Shown: positions 2,886 to 56,102 of the stretch, one piece after another | Position numbering within the stretch: position 1 is the stretch's first letter | How the letters are laid out: each line of letters opens with the position of its first letter | From: Adineta vaga | Lineage: Eukaryota > Animalia > Rotifera | DNA: 64,000 nucleotides | Reading direction: 5' to 3' | Assembly: GCA_021613535.1 (NCBI GenBank) | Contig: CP075492.1 | Coordinates: forward strand, 12,648,001-12,712,000 | Notes under the pieces: model-generated | Told to the model about the DNA's origin: nothing | The model's input: only the letters and a program-made list of their open reading frames with translations | Database searches by the model: none | Made by a program: the position numbers and the translations under genes

Positions 2886-5800
2886 ATGAACGAATTTCTT
2901 CTGATTCTACTTCTAACAATTATCACAAGTCAGACACAAGGTATAGTCTTTCATCCACTTAGACAACAACGAAATAGTTCAAGAAGACTGATTGACTAGA
3001 TATACATATATGAGAGAGTTGATTTAATCAGTATTCATCGATGATTGTTATGAAAATGAATGAAGTAGGATAAAATATGTCAATAAACAGAAGACTATTG
3101 AGTGACTTTAATATTTTAATGAAATCTTTAAACACGTTTTATTGAAAAAGAAAACTTCTATATGGTTTCATAAAAAAAATTGTTTAATTAAGGTCAACCA
3201 TGTACACTTCAATTTCTCCCTGCACTTCAAATCATTACAATGTCTGAGGATACGCAACCAGGAGATCTTGTTGCTCGTCTACAAATTACTGGTACTGCAT
3301 CCGAAATCTCTACTCGACTTGTTTATAATAGTTCAGAAGTGAAAACAAACGGAACAGAATATTTCACATTGAATTTTACTAATCTTTATTTGCGTTCGTG
3401 TAAGTTTTTGATTGAATTGACTAAATAATGAAATTTTCTATTGTTTCAATTAGCTCTTGATTACGAATGGTGGTCAACAAATAATTATCCAAATCCATTT
3501 CGTTTCATTGTGGAATGTACAGTTTTAGCAGATCAAACACGGCGAAATATTGATTTTCAATTGGATCTTATCGATGCTAATGATAATCCACCGAGATTTA
3601 ATCAATCAATCTATCAAATCAATATATCAGAAAAAACAGCGATCAATACGATTGTATCAACAGCAATTTCAGCATATGATCTAGATTCCGGCACCTATGG
3701 CATGTTTTCATATTATCTTTCAAATAATTCATCACCATATGATGTAAGTCATTGACTATTTTGAAGTATTTGTAAAAAAAATGTTTGTTTTTTAGTCTTA
3801 TTTTCAATTATTAAGTACGAAAAATGCCGGTTTAATTCTTGTCAAAACGCTTGATTATAATTCGATGATTCCAAATTTTAATCTATCGATCATTGCACAA
3901 GTAAAACTAACAATTTTCTTTCCAATCTCATGTATTTAATCGTAGGATATTTCCAATTCTTCACTTTCATCTCAAGCAACTCTGTCCATTCATATTATTG
4001 ATGTAGATGATCTAAATCCTGCTTTTCTTTCATCATCCTATAATCTCAATATTTCCATTAATACAACAATTGTATGTTTAAAAATCGTCATAAATTTTAC
4101 GAAGGTACAAAAAAACAAATGATTGTTACTTTTTTTTAGGGTTCAGAAGTTATACCCAATCAAGGTCGAATCTTTGCATATGATCAAGATTTAGGAATCA
4201 ATACAACGATTATTTATTCGATATTAACATCAAGTTAGAGAATACTTTTCGTTTGTTTTCATATTTAAATCGTTTATTTTAGATATCTATTTGACAATTA
4301 ACAATCGTACTGGTGTTATTACACTCCAACGCGAATTCAATTCTACAATACAATTTGATCTTTTAATTAAAGTAAAGTTTACTACAATTGAAATGTGTTA
4401 TATCATGTTTTTTTTCCTACTCGAAATTAAGGCAGAACAAATTGATAATTCTAATCGATCTGTAACGACGATTTTACATGTGAATATCTTTGAAATTAAT
4501 CTTTATCCTCCAAGTTTTTTCAATTCTCCTTATTCAATGTTTGGATATTTATCGAATAATATTGATCAAATACCAATTTTCAATGGAACTGTCATTGATA
4601 ATGATGCAGTAAGAAGAAATCTTTCTTCTATAAGAAAAAAAATATGAATATTTTTATATAGTTACCAAGATTAAGTTATGGATATAGTTGTGATTCTTCA
4701 TTACTCTATTTAAATATTAAAAAAACCAGGTAAAAAACATGTCTATGAAAGAATAAGTATATGATTATGATCTTTTTATGTATAGTCTTCGTGATTTTCA
4801 AATTCGACCGATTTATTTTCAAACACTTCCTGTTTGTCAACCATGTTTATGTGTATTGAATGTTTCGGATGGACTTTATGTAAGTTTCAATCGTTTATTA
4901 TATTTTTATAATTGTATTCAATTTAATTTAGTCAAGTCAAACAAATCTTAATGTTCGTCTTTATACACCGATTTCATTTGCATTGAATTCCTATGTATTC
5001 TCAGCTGATTATCCATTGAGTGATCCGACTATTACGATCGGTCAGATTCTGGTAGATTATTTGATAACTAACAATTTACTTTTATTTACTCAATCATCTT
5101 CTTTAGATTAACACTGATTCACTCTGCTCAGTGCAATATTCTCTCCTTGGTTCATCAAGTGCTGTCTTTTCAATTTCTTCCAATGGTAATATCACATGGA
5201 CAAATCTATTGTCACCACCAACTCAAGAAGTTTATCAATTTGAAGTTTTCATTCGACAAAATTGTTCATTACTATCGATGAATATATCTACCGATGTGAT
5301 TGTAACTATTCGTAATTTTCCCTCTTCAATTCCTTCTTCAACGTCAACATCATCACGACTTGATAATGGCACAATCTATGCTATTATTGGAAGTGTTGGT
5401 GCATTTATATTAATTATTGTTGCAGTTCTATTTATTATTATTTATTATCATATTCAACGTGCTAAACAACGTGTACCACCATTTTTTAAAATACGAAAAT
5501 CTTCTCCAGCACAAGGTTTAACATTTTTCAAATCGAAAAGTCCATTAAATGATTCGTCACCATATACATTAGGTGTTCGAGATGATGATTCATCAAATAG
5601 CAGTAGTGATCATACATCCTCATCACCATTAAATAATCGTCTTCTTTCTGGACGTTATAAAGTCAATGAATTACCTGTTAATACAACTATTGAAGAATTA
5701 TTATCATCGTATGATAATCGTTCGACAAGTAGTTCATCGAGTTCATCAGGTGGAGGTGAACATGGTATGACATCGAATACAGGTTCATTTCGTACAGTTA

Positions 5801-6485
5801 TACGTGAAACTATTGATCATCAACAATTAGATACGATTAATGAAGATAGACAATGGATGAATAGTAATCTTGAACAAAGACGTACCAATAGTTTACGACA
5901 TCAAATTATTCCTGAAGATGCTATGGATATTATATCTGAATCTCATGAGGTAGATATTAGATTAAAATATCCTACTAATGCTTGTTTGACTTGCTTAAAT
6001 TCTAATTCAATTAATTCTCTGTGTTCTCATGCTTGTTCATTGTTATCGAGCATATCAACTCACTCATTGTTATCTTCCTCTTCCTCCTCATCATCAGGTT
6101 CGACAACCACTGTTGCTGCTTGTCAACAACAAACAACAACAACACCAACAGTTGAAGTAGGACATAACAGCTCTTGTAGTTTCGATTATGCTCGATTCAA
6201 TTTGATTGCTTCGACTCGTTGCTAATTCTTGTAGTAGTAGTATTATTCATTTATTTGTTGTTGTTTTTGTTTTTCTATCTAACAAATGCTTGTAACTAAT
6301 AGATATCTGCATGATAGTTTTTAATTTCGATTAAATACATTGCAATATATTTCTTCTTTCAGTCATCCATCAGCGGCACAGGTACCGACGTTGGACTATC
6401 ACCATCAACGATATTACACCAACAGTCCAACTCGAGAAATGTTCTCAGTCGAAATTTAAATGAATATTTGACAGTATTTGTGTAA
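2886..6485 (+). CDS. Non-classical cadherin: signal peptide, about 3-4 EC repeats (later ones degenerate), one TM helix, long Ser-rich cytoplasmic tail; multi-exon
   Basis: Exon 1 2886-2940 MNEFLLILLLTIITSQTQ splices to 3193. Cadherin Ca2+-binding motifs LDYE, DANDNPPRF, AYDLDSG, DVDDLNPAF, AYDQDLG, EINLYPPSF. TM IYAIIGSVGAFILIIVAVLFIIIYY. The 3' end is uncertain: read-through stop at 6225, or splicing 5949 to 6363 ending YLTVFV* at 6485. Confidence 0.85.
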
Positions 6486-7324
6486 AGAGAAAGAGTAGAT
6501 TTTATTGAAGTCAATATTATGTTGTTTATTTTCGATAAGAATTCTTTCAAGTAAACGACACGTTTTATTTGTATTCATCTTTTTTTTGGTCTCTTTTGTT
6601 TCTTTTTTTTTCTTCTTATTACGAAATATTTGGTAAAAGATAGCTGCGATCTGAGTGATATACATTGGAACGAAAAATTGATTTGAAAATATACTTTCTA
6701 TGAAAGTCCTTCATATAATTGACGAGCGAATTTCTTTTCACCAGTTTGAAATTAGATGGGAGGTGTGGAATATGTCTCGTATAAAACATATTCATTTTTT
6801 TTATATCAATGTATTTCACACAATTGATGTAAAATGAAAAATGATGTAATATATGTAAAGTTGGTTCGATATACGATTGAAGCGGAAGATTCAATGGTAA
6901 GTGCTTTTTTTTTTGCTGGTGCAAAATGAAGTTGGAGAATGATTCGTGCAAACAACATTTCAAATAGAACGATTGTACAACTATAGTCTTCTGAATGATA
7001 AGAAATCTTTTTGCCTGCTTGTAATTAGTAATATCATGTCAATATGCGACATCTAATGTATATCAGTCTATTCTATTCTAATATTCGTCAGTCCGAAAAT
7101 AATTCTCCTTCCTTGCCGATTATTTTGATCCGAAATCAGTAAAAAATGTATAATTTATCGAGGAAAGATCTCTTCTACTTTATTTTGTCGAACAATTATT
7201 GTTCTGTTTATTTATTTTTTTTTTATAATTTGTTCAGTTTGTACATATTAAATGAACAATATGGCGAGCAATATCAACTAATATACACATCTACATATCC
7301 TTCCTTCGAGCTTATTCTTCACTG

Positions 7325-9725
7325 ATGCATTACGAATCATATCAAATGTCTACGACAATTACGAGTCGTCGTAATCAGCACGGCGCAGGCGGTGGAATCG
7401 ATGGTTATACTGCTCAAGATCATATCGATGCAAGTAATGCACAATTAAATTCAACACGAGCTCAACGTATTCGAGCAGCAATATTTCCTGAAATAGCTGA
7501 TGATAATAGTTCGAATAATGTACCATGTTCACCTATATCTCCAACGCAATTTCGTACTGGTCAAGCAACAGCTGTACAAAAACTATCTGAACCATCACAA
7601 CTATTAAAAAATGCTGTTAATGATATCATTAATTACAAAGAAGATGCAGAAATTACTGAAAAAGCACTTCCCGAACTTATTCGTTTATTAAATGATAATG
7701 ATCCACTTATTGCTGGACAAGCAGCATTAGTTTTACATACTTTAGCAAGAAAAGAAGCCAGTCGAATTGTATTATCCAGTTCACATATAGTACAAGCATT
7801 AATTCAAGCCATATCAAATCCACGTGCTACAGATGAAACACGTCGAGATGTTGCAGGAGTATTATATTGTCTTTCTCAATATAAACAAGGTCTTCTAATG
7901 ATTTTTAAAGCAGGTGGTATTCCAGTACTTGTTAAATTACTCGAGTAAATATCATTTAATTTGATTTGCGAAATTCCTCAATTGTTTATCTTATTTTAGT
8001 TCATGCAATGAATTTGTTGTTAATCATGCATTATCTACATTACATAATTTATTATTATATATTGAACAAGCAAAATGTGAAGTTATTTGTTGTGGTGGTG
8101 GTCAAAAAATGATTTGTTTATTAAATAATCCCAATCCAAAATTTCTTGCCATTCTTATCGATTGTCTCTATATGTTAGCATTCCATAATGAAGATATGAA
8201 ATTACTTATTGAATCAAGTAATGGTTCACAACAATTATTGCGAATTTTAGATATGACAAATTATGAGAAATTAGCTTGGACAACAACACGTCTTCTTCGA
8301 GTTTTATCTGCTAGTCCAACAATAAAAACAAATATGGTTGTGAAAAATACTGTACAAATCTTAGAAAAACAATTGTATCAACCAATTAGTTTACGTGTTC
8401 AACAGAATTGTTTACTGATTCTTCGTAATCTATCTGATCAAGCTGTTCAATTAGTTCGTAGATTACTTATCTTTTGTTTTAATTCTTAAGTGAAATTGTT
8501 TTATTTAGGAAAATCTTGATTCACTCATTCGTTTACTCATCGATCTTTTACGATCCAGTGATTTTATTACTGTTACATGTTCAGCTGGTATTCTTTCGAA
8601 TTTAACATGTAATCATCAATATAATAAAGCATTTGTTGTACAATCTGATGGTGTACATGCTTTGATCAATACATTACTTCAAGGTCATAATAAAGAAGAA
8701 CTTATTGAACCAACGATTTGTACATTAAGACATGTAACAAATCGACATTCACATGCAAATGAAGCACAAAATATCATTCGAAGTATGCATGGATATGTAC
8801 CTATTATTGATTTACTGAATCCAACATTATATTCTTGGCCAATAATTAAATCAACAATAAGTTTAATAAGAAATTTAGGTTTATCAAAAGAAAATCTACC
8901 CGCCTTACGTGAAGCAAATGCCGTAGAAAAATTAGTACAAATACTTATTCAAAGTTATGATCAATTAGAGCATCAAACAGCTCATAAACAATTCAATGAT
9001 AATTGTATTCCTATGAATGATATTATTGAAGGTTCTATTTGTGCATTACATGTTCTTGCAAAAGATCCACAAAGTCGACAGATGATAAGAAATTTAGATT
9101 CAATACCATTATTTGTTCAAGTAAGAACATGTCGAAGAGAACGAATAAAGAACGAAAGTTTTTTTTTTCCCGATTAGTGTCTTCGTGCACCAACAAATAT
9201 ACCAATTCAACGTGCAACAACAGGTGTTCTATGTGAATTAGTTAATGATCGAACATGTGTAGAATGTATTGAACAACAAAATTGTACACAAATCTTAACA
9301 GATTTACTTAAATCAAATGATGAGGGTGTTGGTTAGTTGAATGAGTTGTTTTGTTTTTTTCTTCATGATAAAAAAGAAACGAATTTCTTGATCGTATTTC
9401 ATAGCAACATGTGCAGCTGCGATTTTATTCCGTTTGTCAGATGATAAACCATGCAATGATGGTGTGACAACATTTTATCGTGAAGAACATGGTGTTAAAA
9501 ATGTAAATATTTTATTCTTATTAAAACATTTACGAATCGTCTTCTTTTTAGCATTATCAACCGAAACCTGATCCTTATGCACGATCTTTTCGACGAACAC
9601 CACCACCAATGCATGATGCACCTATTATTAGTTATTACACATCGGAAAGTTCACCTGTTAGTGGTTTAATCGATAATCCCAATTGTCAAGGAGGAGGAGG
9701 TGCTTGGCTTGATAGTGATCTGTGA
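7325..9725 (+). CDS. CTNNB1: Beta-catenin/armadillo paralog A (adhesion-type features)
   Basis: TRAQRIRAAIFPE, VQKLSEPSQLLKNAVNDIINYKEDAEITEKALPELIRLLND, GILSNLTCNHQYNK, ICTLRHVTNRH, EGVATCAAAILFRLSDDK and C-terminal AWLDSDL* align with vertebrate beta-catenin (TRAQRVRAAMFPE ... AWFDTDL). Six coding exons. Confidence 0.93.
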
Positions 9726-9960
9726 AAACATTGCTTTTTCAAAATCGAAATATTTATACGTAGATAGATAGTTTTTATATATTATATACTTATATCTCAG
9801 GGATTTAGGTATTTATTTTAATCGATCTAATTATTTATTCATTTAGTTTTCAATCTCAGACAGATATATTTATATTTGCTCAAAACATTTTTAGTTTTTT
9901 TTTATCTAATAAAATTTCGTATTATTGCAGATCATTGAATTCTATTGATAATACATCATC

Positions 9961-10921
9961 ATGGCTCGATCGAAATGTTTCTTGTATGATAACGTGTTAT
10001 CTCAATTTGAATAAAACAACTAAGTTATTCTTCTTTGTTTTGTCATTTAGCGATGTTAATGTTGATGATAAACCATTGGGACGAATTTTATTTCTCGTAA
10101 GTCAATTGAAATATTATTTATAATGGCGATATTCTGTTTTTGTTTTCTTTTCAATTAGCTCTATAATGATGTTGTACCTAAGACAGCAGGTATGAAGATA
10201 AAACGAAATGTTAAACTGAAAGATTTGATTTTGAACTATAGAAAATTTTCGTGCTCTCTGTACGGGTGAACGAGGTTATGGATATAAAGATTCAACTTTT
10301 CATCGAGTAATTCCTCAATTTATGTTGCAAGGTGGTGATTTTGAACGACAGTAAATTAATATTGTTTTCTAAGAATTATTTATTGAAATTATGTCATCTA
10401 TTTTAGTAATGGTACTGGTGGATATAGGTAAGTAAGATTCCGATGATATAATGATAAACTCTTAATTATTGAATTAATTAGTATTTATGGAGGTAAATTT
10501 GCCGATGAAAAGTATGTAGTTTTAAATATGATTAAGTGAAAGAATATTATGTTGTTGTATATCATTAGTTTTCAACTTAAACATACAAAAGAAGGTTTAC
10601 TTTCGATGGCTAATGCTGGCAAAAATACGAATGGTATTGATTTCTTTTCTATTGCAAAAGAAAACGTGTCGGACATTTTCATTTAAAATTTAGGTTCACA
10701 ATTCTTTGTTACCACTGTTCAAACACCGTGGCTTGATGGTAAACATGTATGTATAGCGAGATATACTTCGTTTTTTTTTAATATTTTCTTATTCATAGGT
10801 TGTCTTTGGTGAAGTTACGGATGGTATGGATATTGTTCGTAAAATCGAAGCTTTAGGTTCACAATCAGGCAAAACACAAAAACGTATTACAATTGCTGCT
10901 TGTGGTGAATTAGATCGTTAA
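9961..10921 (+). CDS. Cyclophilin A-type peptidyl-prolyl isomerase, copy 1 (8 introns)
   Basis: Spliced: [132 protein letters not shown]...CGELDR*. Confidence 0.95.
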
Positions 10922-11351
10922 AGATCATGCTCAATTTTGACTCATTCTTCAAATTATTCTCGCATATGCATGTTTTTTTACTCACCTTCAGTTTCATATA
11001 TAATGAGTATGATGATGCTTTATAGTGTTACCTAGATCGCGTGTTAGTAGAAGAAAGTGAATGATTGATAACCCTGTTACGTACACATCGTTATTATTGA
11101 TTATGTTTAGATGAAATTTTAAACAATAAAGATAGCAAACGTTTTTCTTTTTCTCAATTGAATCCATTTGATCAATGAACATGTCAAATAAAATCTTGAT
11201 AGCATATTAGTTCAATGATTAAAAAAAATCTTTCATTCTCGGAAGAGATGATGAATATTTCCTGACGTGAATCTCGTTGTTTCCTGACGATAGATGGCAT
11301 TAAACTCATAGTAATTGCGTTTAATTCATGAAGTCATTTCAAATAGATGAC

Positions 11352-11404
11352 TTCGTATGATTTTTCAAATGAAAAAAATAAAAAAATAAAAAAAATCATA
11401 CGAA
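11352..11404. repeat. 14-bp perfect inverted repeat with A-rich 25-nt spacer
   Basis: TTCGTATGATTTTT (11352-11365) and AAAAATCATACGAA (11391-11404). Confidence 0.7.
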
Positions 11405-11757
11405 TGATTTTTACGATTTAAATAAAATAGAGAGGACACAATGTTAACAAGTTAGATAATTATTCTTTTCATTGGTTAAGAACAAACAACGCTGGCTACA
11501 TATCGACATCCGAACAGACAAAGAACGACCGCCGTGTCGGTCGTTTCTTGTTCTTCATCTCGTTTCCATTTTCTACTTTTTTTCACTCGGCTTCATCACA
11601 AACGCACACATCTAACAAATTTAGGTAAGAATAATGAACGCATACCGTAATGCATTTCTCGAGCACATAATAAAAGAGAAGAGAGAAAAACGCACTAATA
11701 GAATAACGAACATCTATCATTTTATTCTTGCACTTTCTTTTTAACCAGATAGTAATC

Positions 11758-14041
11758 ATGGATTACCCAACAAATAATCGGTCACATCCACCACCACCGC
11801 CACCGATGCATCATCAAATGCCACCTCATCCTATGCATCATCCTCAACATCCACTTCTATCAAATCAATTACAACCAATTAATCCTGAAACACATACATC
11901 GATGTGGCTTGATGATCCCTATAATGTTTCTAATGCATCCGCATCACAACGTGATTCTGGATTTAATTCTCGACCAGCTTCATTGCGTAGTATAGATTCA
12001 GCAGTAACAAACACTACTGGTCCAATTCATCATGGACCAGCTACACCTGTTGGTTATGAACAACTTCCACCTCCACCACCATTACCACCCGATCATGAAA
12101 ATATACATCCACAATATGCTGAAATGCAATCAGCACCTGTTCCACCTTCACGACCGGATCCTAATCAAGTCATAGCTGAACTATTAACTTTATTAATGGA
12201 AGATGATCCTGTTATTGTTCGTGAAGCAATTACTGTTACACAAATGTTAGTAAAAGAAGGTGGTGAAGCTCGGTCAGAAGTTATCCGTAATCGTGACGTA
12301 AGATTTCAATTGAATTCACTTATTTGTTAGAAACATCACTTCTTTTTTTTTTGTTAGTTAATTGTTGCTCTTTTGGAAAGTTTTTCAAAAGACGTTGGTG
12401 ATGGTAAAATTATCTATGCACTCGCTAGTTTGTTTCATTCACTTTCTCAACAACAAGAAGGTCTTCGAGCGATACTTGAATGTGGTGGAATTCCACGATT
12501 GATTCAAATCCTCGAGTAAGCGATATCCTTGCATTCTATTTTATATGTCTTATTCTAATTTTAGTTCACCTGATAATATCGTGAATTTTGTTATCACAAC
12601 TTTACATAATTTTCTTATTGTTCTTCAAGAACAATCCGCTAATGAAATCGATCGTGCCAATGGTACACATAGTTTTATTAATTTACTTCAAAGTACTAGT
12701 GAGAAATTGTTAACATTAGTATCTGATTGTCTACTTAAAATGTCCAGTTATAATTTAAATTCGAAATTATTCATTCAAAATAGTGAAGAATGTGTTCAAC
12801 GTCTTCTCTATATATTTGATACATCAAAATATGATAAATTATTATTAACTATATCGAAATTATTTCCCATTATATCATCAGGAAATGAAATCATTAAAAG
12901 AGTATTTTTACAATTCAATGCATTGAGTATATTAGAAAAACAAATTAAAACAACGAAAAGTATTCGAATAAGACATAATTGTTTAATTGCATTAAGAAAT
13001 ATATCTGATCAAGCAACACGAATGGTAAGAAACATCTAACATGAGAGATCTAGTGAAGCGAATGAAATATCCATCAGATTTAGAACTATTCGATGAGTGA
13101 TTTCGAAGAAAAAAGAAACTGATTGTTTTCTTATATTTAGCGTGATGTGGATTCATTAATACAACAATTAACAGGAATTTTAGTAACCGATGATCAACAA
13201 TCCGTCTTATGTTCATTAGGAATTTTAAGTAATTTAACAGCAGACAATCGAACAAATAAAAGTTTATTAGTGAAATTAAATGGTGTACAAGGTTTAATGC
13301 AAAGATTAATGATGAATGCCGATGGAAATGATGATATAATTGAAGGAGCTGTAAGTGAATTTGCTTTTTTGTCTTTTCTACTTGTAAAACGTATTTTTGT
13401 TTTACGTTTTAGTTATGTACTCTTCGACATGTTACTGCTCGTCATGATTTTGAGAACGAAGCTCGTGAAGCAATTCGAAAATCTTATGGAATTGGAAATA
13501 TAATTAAATTATTACGCGATAAAAACTTTAAAGAACATTGGGGAATAATTAAAGCAACAGTTGGATTAATAAAAAATCTTGCTCTATCACCTTCAATTAT
13601 TCCGCAACTATGCGAACAAAATGCGATTCGAAAATTGATTGAATTATTGATCAATATTGATCGTGAACGAATGAAACTTTACGAAGAAAATAAACATCAA
13701 TATTTGCATCAATTTGATGTGATGATTGAACATATTCTTGGAGCATTGAATAATTTGGCGAAAGATTTATCATGTAAAACGATTATTAAAGATACGAATG
13801 TTATTTCAATCTTTGTTCGCGTAAGTTTGATGAAGATTTTGTTTCGATTTGATTTGATTTTTTCTTGAAATTTTAGTATTCACATCTATCGACTTGTTCA
13901 CTACAACAAATCTCGAGTAATTTATTGAAAGAATTAAATATCGATCGTGATCGAATACAATCCAATGATTTATCATCTCATCAACAAGCATTTAATAATA
14001 ATAATAATACTCTGATCGATTCTCGTCATAATCGTCAGTAG
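11758..14041 (+). CDS. CTNNB1: Beta-catenin/armadillo paralog B (phosphodegron present, C-terminally truncated)
   Basis: N-terminal Pro/His-rich region with RDSGFNSRPASLRS. ARM motifs CGGIPRLIQIL, VITTLHNFL, NCLIALRNISD, GILSNLTADNRTNK, LCTLRHVTARH, WGIIKATVGLIKNLAL. Last exon 13877-14041 ends ...LLKELNIDR...HNRQ*. A 5'UTR intron lies at about 11626-11748. Confidence 0.9.
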
Positions 14042-14401: not shown

Positions 14402-15261
14402 ATGTCTGGTGCCAATGTTTTCTTCGATTGTGCCGTTGATGGCAAACCACTTGGTCGTATCACATTCAAAGTAAATAGATTAAATTTGTATTTCGATCGA
14501 TACTCATTCATTCTTTCCTCTTTTTATTTTATAGCTCTATGATGATGTTGTACCAAAAACAACCGGTATGTTAAACTAGAAAAGACATGTACTTGATTGT
14601 AGAGATGATTTCTTTTCTCTGTTTTCAGCCAATTTCCGAGCTTTATGCACAGGCGAAAAAGGTTTCGGTTATGAAGGAAGCTCATTCCATCGTGTCATTC
14701 CTCAATTTATGCTTCAAGGTAATGAATGATCTTGATAATTATTTTTCAATGAATCTACTGTTCTATTTCTATAGGTGGTGATTTCACACGACAGTAAGTA
14801 AAGACTTCTATGACAGAAACATTTAATTATTACATTATTTCATTCTCTCTTCTTTTCTCTCCATCCAATAGCAATGGTACAGGTGGTAAAAGGTAAATCG
14901 ATACTTTATTTGTAAAATTACCTACTCTCTTTCATTTAGTATCTATGGTGAAAAATTCGCCGATGAAAACTTTAAACTCAAACACACCAAACCCGGTCTT
15001 TTATCTATGGCTAATGCTGGTCCAAACACCAACGGTTCCCAATTCTTCATTACAACTGTTGTAACATCATGGCTCGATGGCAAACATGTAAGATCGTGCG
15101 GAAAGAAATTTTGTTGATTATGCTCTTTTTTCTGTTTCCTAAAGGTTGTCTTCGGTGAAGTTGTTGATGGTATGGATTTTGTCAAGGAAATTGAAGGCTT
15201 AGGCTCACAATCTGGAACACCAAAAAAGAAAATTACAATTACCAAATCTGGTACCCTCTAA
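14402..15261 (+). CDS. Cyclophilin A-type peptidyl-prolyl isomerase, copy 2 (6 introns)
   Basis: Spliced: [135 protein letters not shown]...KSGTL*. Confidence 0.96.
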
Positions 15262-46935: not shown

Positions 46936-55856
<8,921 letters not shown>

Positions 55857-56102
55857 CGTTGTTAAGAAGGAGATATCTTGCTTTTCAATGCGCACAACGC
55901 GCAGAAAATTCAAGAAAACAAAGCAAGCAAACGAATGTTTATCACAGATCTAAAAACTAGAAGTGAACTTTGATTTTCTTATTGGTCACAATACTGTCAG
56001 ATAGATTTTCTTTCTTTTCTTTTCTTTCACGGATAAAATTAAAATAAATGAGACAAAAAAAACAAACGAAAAGATAGATATTATTCATAATCAGGAATGT
56101 TT

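Follow-up and report, generated by a model that had tools for sequence, protein, structure and literature searches.

A linked pair of beta-catenin genes in bdelloid rotifers divides the degron from the adhesion modules

How does an animal lineage divide one bifunctional beta-catenin between two genes, and which of the two then carries the Wnt output? The question is raised by a 64,000-nucleotide (nt) stretch of the bdelloid rotifer Adineta vaga (contig CP075492.1, positions 12,648,001 to 12,712,000; hereafter the window), which holds two linked beta-catenin genes, A and B, in DNA of 30% G+C with GT-AG introns of 50-120 nt. Beta-catenin splits between adhesion and signalling are known from nematodes, flatworms and, in part, insects, and according to a 2017 survey every lophotrochozoan examined, flatworms excepted, has one bifunctional gene (PMC5643146); rotifer beta-catenin paralogs turned up nowhere in the literature covered, outside which most subscription papers lie. 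Here, synteny, introns and trees together show that the pair arose by duplication and then split its modules, and we lean towards a reading in which A would be junctional and B a degradation-regulated TCF partner that provides Wnt output without a C-terminal tail.

Both genes encode ARM solenoids whose best sequence and structure matches are beta-catenin, and both keep the K312 and K435 charged buttons (human numbering throughout), as a sequence-only reading of the window had proposed. Similarity searches were made with the exons one by one, and full-length searches and folds used database proteins identical to our local models, namely I4U23_014817 on CP075492.1 for A (found with its third exon) and UJR10622.1 for B. 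That reading had described A as lacking a DSGxxS degron and preceded by an in-frame stop, yet keeping the alpha-catenin-binding segment ([sequence]...IINYKEDAE) with the Y142 equivalent, ARM12 and a terminal WLDSDL, and every one of these features is borne out. Indeed, two alpha-catenin complexes contain beta-catenin fragments that exon 1 of A matches, 4ONS over residues 37-111 (E 1.7e-13) and 1DOW over 82-110 (E 9e-6). T120 and Y142 are kept in A but not in B, and all twelve ARM repeats are present; A-type repeats are 46-53% identical to vertebrate ones, and all TCF-contact residues checked in A are kept. Transcript-like contigs from four studies, which we took to be RNA by guess and in which GT-AG introns are precisely left out at the joints, bridge all five A introns and run on unspliced upstream to 7132-7236, past the stop, and so give no sign of a degron exon. 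An upstream coding exon was thus looked for and rejected, as 13 other A records start alike; a putative donor at 6895-6899 (ATG followed by GT) was set aside as it is without contig support, and an alternative donor at 9328 because it shifts the frame and reads favour 9332. Strain or allele variants of A carry a 6-nt Gly-Gly insertion at 9688, before the PDZ motif, or a two-base change at 7384-7385 in the N-terminal arm, and loose contig ends from three runs fall at 9519 and 9852, one of them inside the last intron.

B had been described as carrying DSGFNSRPAS, with Pro-rich sequence in place of the alpha-catenin segment and no PDZ tail, and this too holds: its exon 1 matches no beta-catenin structure, and in its predicted structure, whose closest matches are beta-catenin entries (E 1e-25), residues 1-128 are disordered and Pro/His-rich, followed by eleven repeats at 135-611 and one low-confidence helix. 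The claim that A and B lost complementary modules is right for the degron and the adhesion modules, but B also lacks ARM12, Y654, helix C and the C-terminal tail, ending in a polar stretch, and has lost H578 and R612, while A in the window is itself without helix C. Of a full set of twelve repeats plus helix C, B therefore has eleven repeats, the window's A (the A1 ohnolog) twelve repeats alone, and its ohnolog A2 both. B retains N426, K435, R469, H470, R474, K508, H260, K292, L156, L159, D164, L178 and K312. The roles are TCF contact for N426, K435, R469, H470, R474 and K508, Axin contact for H260 and K292, and the BCL9 site for L156, L159, D164 and L178 (partly PMC11613877, PMC5643146). Although only 35% identical to vertebrate ARM repeats, B is 84-92% identical to its B1 orthologs; with an open, spliced frame, this led us to reject a decaying pseudogene. 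Contigs join its 5' untranslated region (UTR) intron and first two coding introns, so that on the assumption of RNA both genes are expressed and spliced as modelled; introns 3-5 rest on the local model and the identical NCBI model, the contig comparison covering 6620-12600 (5,981 letters). DSGxxS is present in all 29 full-length bdelloid B records, and the Y142 motif, ARM12 and a PDZ tail are absent from every one of them; neither the degron nor any of the TCF hot-spot residues checked varies among three bdelloid genera or between the two ohnologs.

How and when did the pair arise? The two genes had been called a tandem pair, and they are linked but not adjacent: the order on the plus strand is A, cyclophilin 1, B, cyclophilin 2. 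As the two cyclophilins are 75.6% identical and have five intron positions in common, the duplicated unit was most likely a two-gene block of beta-catenin plus cyclophilin. A and B have three intron positions in common, as proposed, although the first lies in phase 2 between LD and S and not after LE; we take all three to be old animal positions in CTNNB1, and they therefore show a copy made at the DNA level while giving no date for it. The date comes from synteny. Adineta, Rotaria and Didymodactylos all have A types and also B types, the latter in B1 and B2 classes; a cadherin-A-cyclophilin-B-cyclophilin block is present again on the ohnologous A. vaga CP075497.1 and in Rotaria, and Didymodactylos carnosus has A-cyclophilin-B-cyclophilin-astacin, so that the block predates both tetraploidy and the genus split. 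This recurrence across several assemblies rules out an assembly artefact and supports placing the duplication on the bdelloid stem, earlier than both tetraploidy and the branching of Didymodactylos. Trees of the ARM domain agree, joining A and B in one clade (support 98, 99 in a quick version of the mixture-model tree, and 100/100), with the long B branch (0.73 + 0.56) pairing with the short A branch and not with the other long branch, and with flatworm beta-catenin-1 outside the rotifer clade. P0129 and P0136, which fell near rotifers in a first tree, were left out with other long rows, as long-branch artefacts, since P0136 is a sponge protein. The independent, still-linked duplication that the sequence-only reading had supposed is thus supported and dated.

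The loss of the degron from A appears to have been stepwise. In the early-branching D. carnosus, A still carries a decayed degron that reads DSDIHS or DSDMHS, Asp taking the place of G34 (L004 about 1157-1260; P0156), and from its sequence this degron is an intermediate of that loss; the 13 other A records examined show no trace of a degron. Two further introns are common to B and D. carnosus A only, and F253N occurs in both. The ohnologs differ as well: helix C is deleted in the window's A and in A. steineri A1, and the former has Cys at Y654, whereas A2 retains both helix C and Y654, so A1 is the faster-evolving ohnolog. In Rotaria sp. Silwood1, the copy at the A1 position (L009 236-2913) is a pseudogene with stops and frameshifts, next to an intact B1. 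The history of the bdelloid split can therefore still be read, from the duplicated block, from the intermediate degron of an early-branching genus and from ohnologs that have decayed to different degrees.

What, then, would each copy do? The duplication on the bdelloid stem divided one bifunctional protein into two, and what each of them now does we infer. Having kept the alpha-catenin helix, ARM12 and PDZ tail as its degron was shed, A would be a stable junctional catenin connecting cadherin to alpha-catenin and actin. B still has the degron and the TCF/Axin groove but has lost the segment for alpha-catenin, the cadherin surface of ARM11-12 and the PDZ tail; it would be a nuclear TCF partner under control of the destruction complex. 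Phosphorylation along a shortened S41-S37-S33 relay would lead to its degradation, and Wnt would stabilise it. Its output would be that of a weak activator or de-repressor, acting through ARM1 (the BCL9 site) and the Pro/His-rich N-terminus and not through a C-terminal tail. No other beta-catenin type with a degron was found in bdelloids, so B is most likely the carrier of Wnt output there. This assignment follows from the pattern of modules and from planarians and Caenorhabditis elegans, in which the partition of adhesion and signalling is experimentally proven (PMC3670178).

The comparison with those systems, drawn by the sequence-only reading, is half right: the partition of degron and adhesion modules stands, but B has no activation tail and A2 keeps one. 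One of Smed-beta-catenin-1 and -2 likewise has the alpha-catenin site and PDZ tail without a GSK3 motif, and the other the GSK3 motif without either adhesion module; unlike B, however, Smed-beta-catenin-1 keeps a transactivation domain beside its degron, and Smed-beta-catenin-2 has lost the Wnt-binding surface and transactivation, where A2 retains the TCF residues and helix C (PMC3670178, PMC5643146). The planarian pair is of separate origin. B more closely recalls Smed-beta-catenin-3/4, which keep the degron but have lost the last ARM repeats, helix C and transactivation domain, beta-catenin-3 also being without the alpha-catenin site; the latter binds TCF and beta-TrCP and inhibits beta-catenin-1, and both work beside a full activator (PMC5643146), none of which was found in bdelloids. 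The position of B as sister to bdelloid A (100/100), in a tree without identified beta-catenin-3/4, speaks against orthology with these flatworm proteins. In C. elegans, the adhesion copy HMP-2 is also degron-less, and the signalling copies BAR-1, SYS-1 and WRM-1 are without alpha-catenin and PDZ motifs (PMC3670178); bdelloids differ in having two types and not four, in a pair still linked in one block, and in the vertebrate-like repeats of A. In bdelloids, the activation-tail modules sit on the 'adhesion' copy, unlike the worm division of labour, and this parting of degron from activation tail makes a natural test of whether Wnt output requires ARM12 and helix C.

Several observations weigh against the assignment of Wnt output to B and adhesion to A. 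B is without helix C and the C-terminal tail, the module set of planarian inhibitors (PMC5643146), and has also lost W338, K345 and W383; A2 has helix C, WFDTDL and the TCF residues, so that nothing visible marks A as adhesion-only; in D. carnosus B the DSGIHS is canonical, but the relay lies one residue out of register; A. vaga has lost several Wnt genes, with few left and no clear LRP5/6 (PMC8711157); and the RNA nature of the runs is a guess only. The logic might even be inverted, with B a Wnt-stabilised competitive inhibitor and the degron-less A2 a constitutively stable activator and junction protein, such that Wnt would lower TCF output. We hold this to be unlikely, though to be taken seriously: the modules of B equal those of Smed-beta-catenin-3 (degron present; alpha-catenin site, last repeats and helix C absent; PMC5643146), B2 terminates immediately past ARM11, A2 and D. 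carnosus A have both helix C and WFDTDL, and no bdelloid copy with both degron and tail was found in three protein searches. However, an activator without a degron would stay on permanently if it were free and not retained at junctions, F253, R274 and W383 are altered in A-type proteins, the A1 ohnolog can do without helix C, and the planarian inhibitor operates alongside a regulated activator, beta-catenin-1. It is improbable that B stands outside canonical Wnt-TCF signalling altogether, its degron answering mitotic, stress or desiccation signals or serving a WRM-1-like kinase scaffold, with A-types covering adhesion and the remaining signalling; its long branch, its divergence from vertebrate repeats and the lack of a clear LRP5/6 would fit, but the invariance of the degron and checked TCF hot-spots would not. 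Highly improbable, in our judgement, is an unseen third beta-catenin with degron and tail that does the Wnt signalling, leaving A junctional and B an accessory inhibitor as in flatworms. Very divergent paralogs do occur in nematodes, and the absence of a third bdelloid type holds among the best 150 of 577 matches listed by an exhaustive homologue search; yet the three protein searches gave bdelloid A- and B-types only, and loose read ends among the contigs match the A2 ohnolog.

The history has its own competitor. Monogonont rotifers appear to have made a parallel split separately. A monogonont B clade, including Brachionus plicatilis (P0357), has the degron E/DSGYST and neither a TRxxRxR helix nor a PDZ tail; an environmental degron-less clade (e.g. 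P0245) has the reverse set. The latter groups within the rotifers (97/99), shares a sample with monogonont B, where it lies on a different long contig, and from the tree is putatively monogonont A. A single early duplication common to all rotifers, after which gene conversion in the linked bdelloid pair came to mimic A/B sisterhood, would account for the shortened relay followed by SxSID that monogonont B and bdelloid B have in common. We regard it as decidedly improbable: approximately unbiased (AU) tests reject both pairings, bdelloid B with monogonont B (p 9e-5) and bdelloid A with putative monogonont A (p 1e-4); monogonont B, unlike bdelloid B, still has Y142, an ARM12 and a Gln-rich tail; and the same shortening is visible in what remains of the degron in D. 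carnosus A, and therefore predates the bdelloid duplication. Rotifer-wide orthology of the two types was set aside accordingly, and because of the same tests we dropped monogonont B as ortholog of bdelloid B, which the short relay had suggested. A sister grouping of the two monogonont types (73/45) is neither established nor rejected, and no partner gene or cyclophilin was seen nearby. Two parallel splits, from an ancestral gene already bearing the shortened S33/S37/S41 relay, are the simplest history. To the known origins of the beta-catenin split, rotifers contribute a firm one and a probable one. A combined account, joining two parallel rotifer splits and a half-decayed degron in Didymodactylos to an inverted bdelloid switch (the only Wnt-stabilised form, B, a tail-less TCF competitor; the only copy with activation modules, A2, undegradable; TCF targets lowered by Wnt), strikes us as unlikely on the whole.

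Table 1. Coordinates of the features discussed, in window positions.
Feature	Position	Strand	Description
Cadherin-domain single-pass membrane gene upstream of A	2886..6485	+	Syntenic on ohnolog and in Rotaria
In-frame stop upstream of the ATG of A	7253..7255	+	Within unspliced 5' region
Beta-catenin A	7325..9725	+	6 coding exons (7325-7944, 8000-8453, 8509-9120, 9178-9331, 9405-9502, 9552-9725), 703 amino acids (aa), 12 ARM repeats, no degron, helix C deleted
Alpha-catenin-binding region of A (predicted)	7457..7657	+	TRAQRIR helix to start of ARM1; Y142 equivalent Y104 at 7634-7636
C-terminal PDZ-type motif of A	9705..9722	+	WLDSDL
Cyclophilin 1, between A and B	9961..10922	+	166 aa, 8 introns, spliced in transcript-like contigs
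5' UTR intron of B	11625..11748	+	Contig joint
Beta-catenin B	11758..14041	+	6 coding exons, 646 aa, ARM1-11 only, short tail; B1 ohnolog
Beta-TrCP-type degron of B	11953..11982	+	DSGFNS within DSGFNSRPAS; S33, S37 and S41 equivalents, no S45, shortened phospho-relay
Cyclophilin 2, downstream of B	14402..15261	+	164 aa, 6 introns, 5 in common with cyclophilin 1

Among the neighbours, the gene upstream of A has a faint Cad99C-like N-terminus; a Pfam search detected no classical cadherin cytoplasmic domain in it, which ruled it out as a classical cadherin. The cyclophilin that follows A has 166 aa in the window and 207 aa on the ohnologous block (L002 8266-9392), and the 207-aa Rotaria magnacalcarata protein (L010 14350-15509) has an N-terminal extension resembling a mitochondrial presequence; the cyclophilin ohnologs may thus have divided into cytosolic and mitochondrial forms. 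Public annotations join beta-catenin A to the next cyclophilin as proteins of 853-958 aa (P0151, P0456, L004 1157-7476); these fusions are probably gene-calling errors, and the A. vaga contigs give separate transcripts.

Other divergent beta-catenins met in the searches include a degron-bearing, C-terminally truncated group (P0024, P0030, P0035, P0042), arthropod-like records that start without a degron (P0195, P0197, P0201) and long-branch copepod paralogs (P0053, P0102). Elsewhere in the window, the minus strand at 47152-55949 carries a long multi-exon gene with BEACH/WD40-like segments, as judged from its translation alone.

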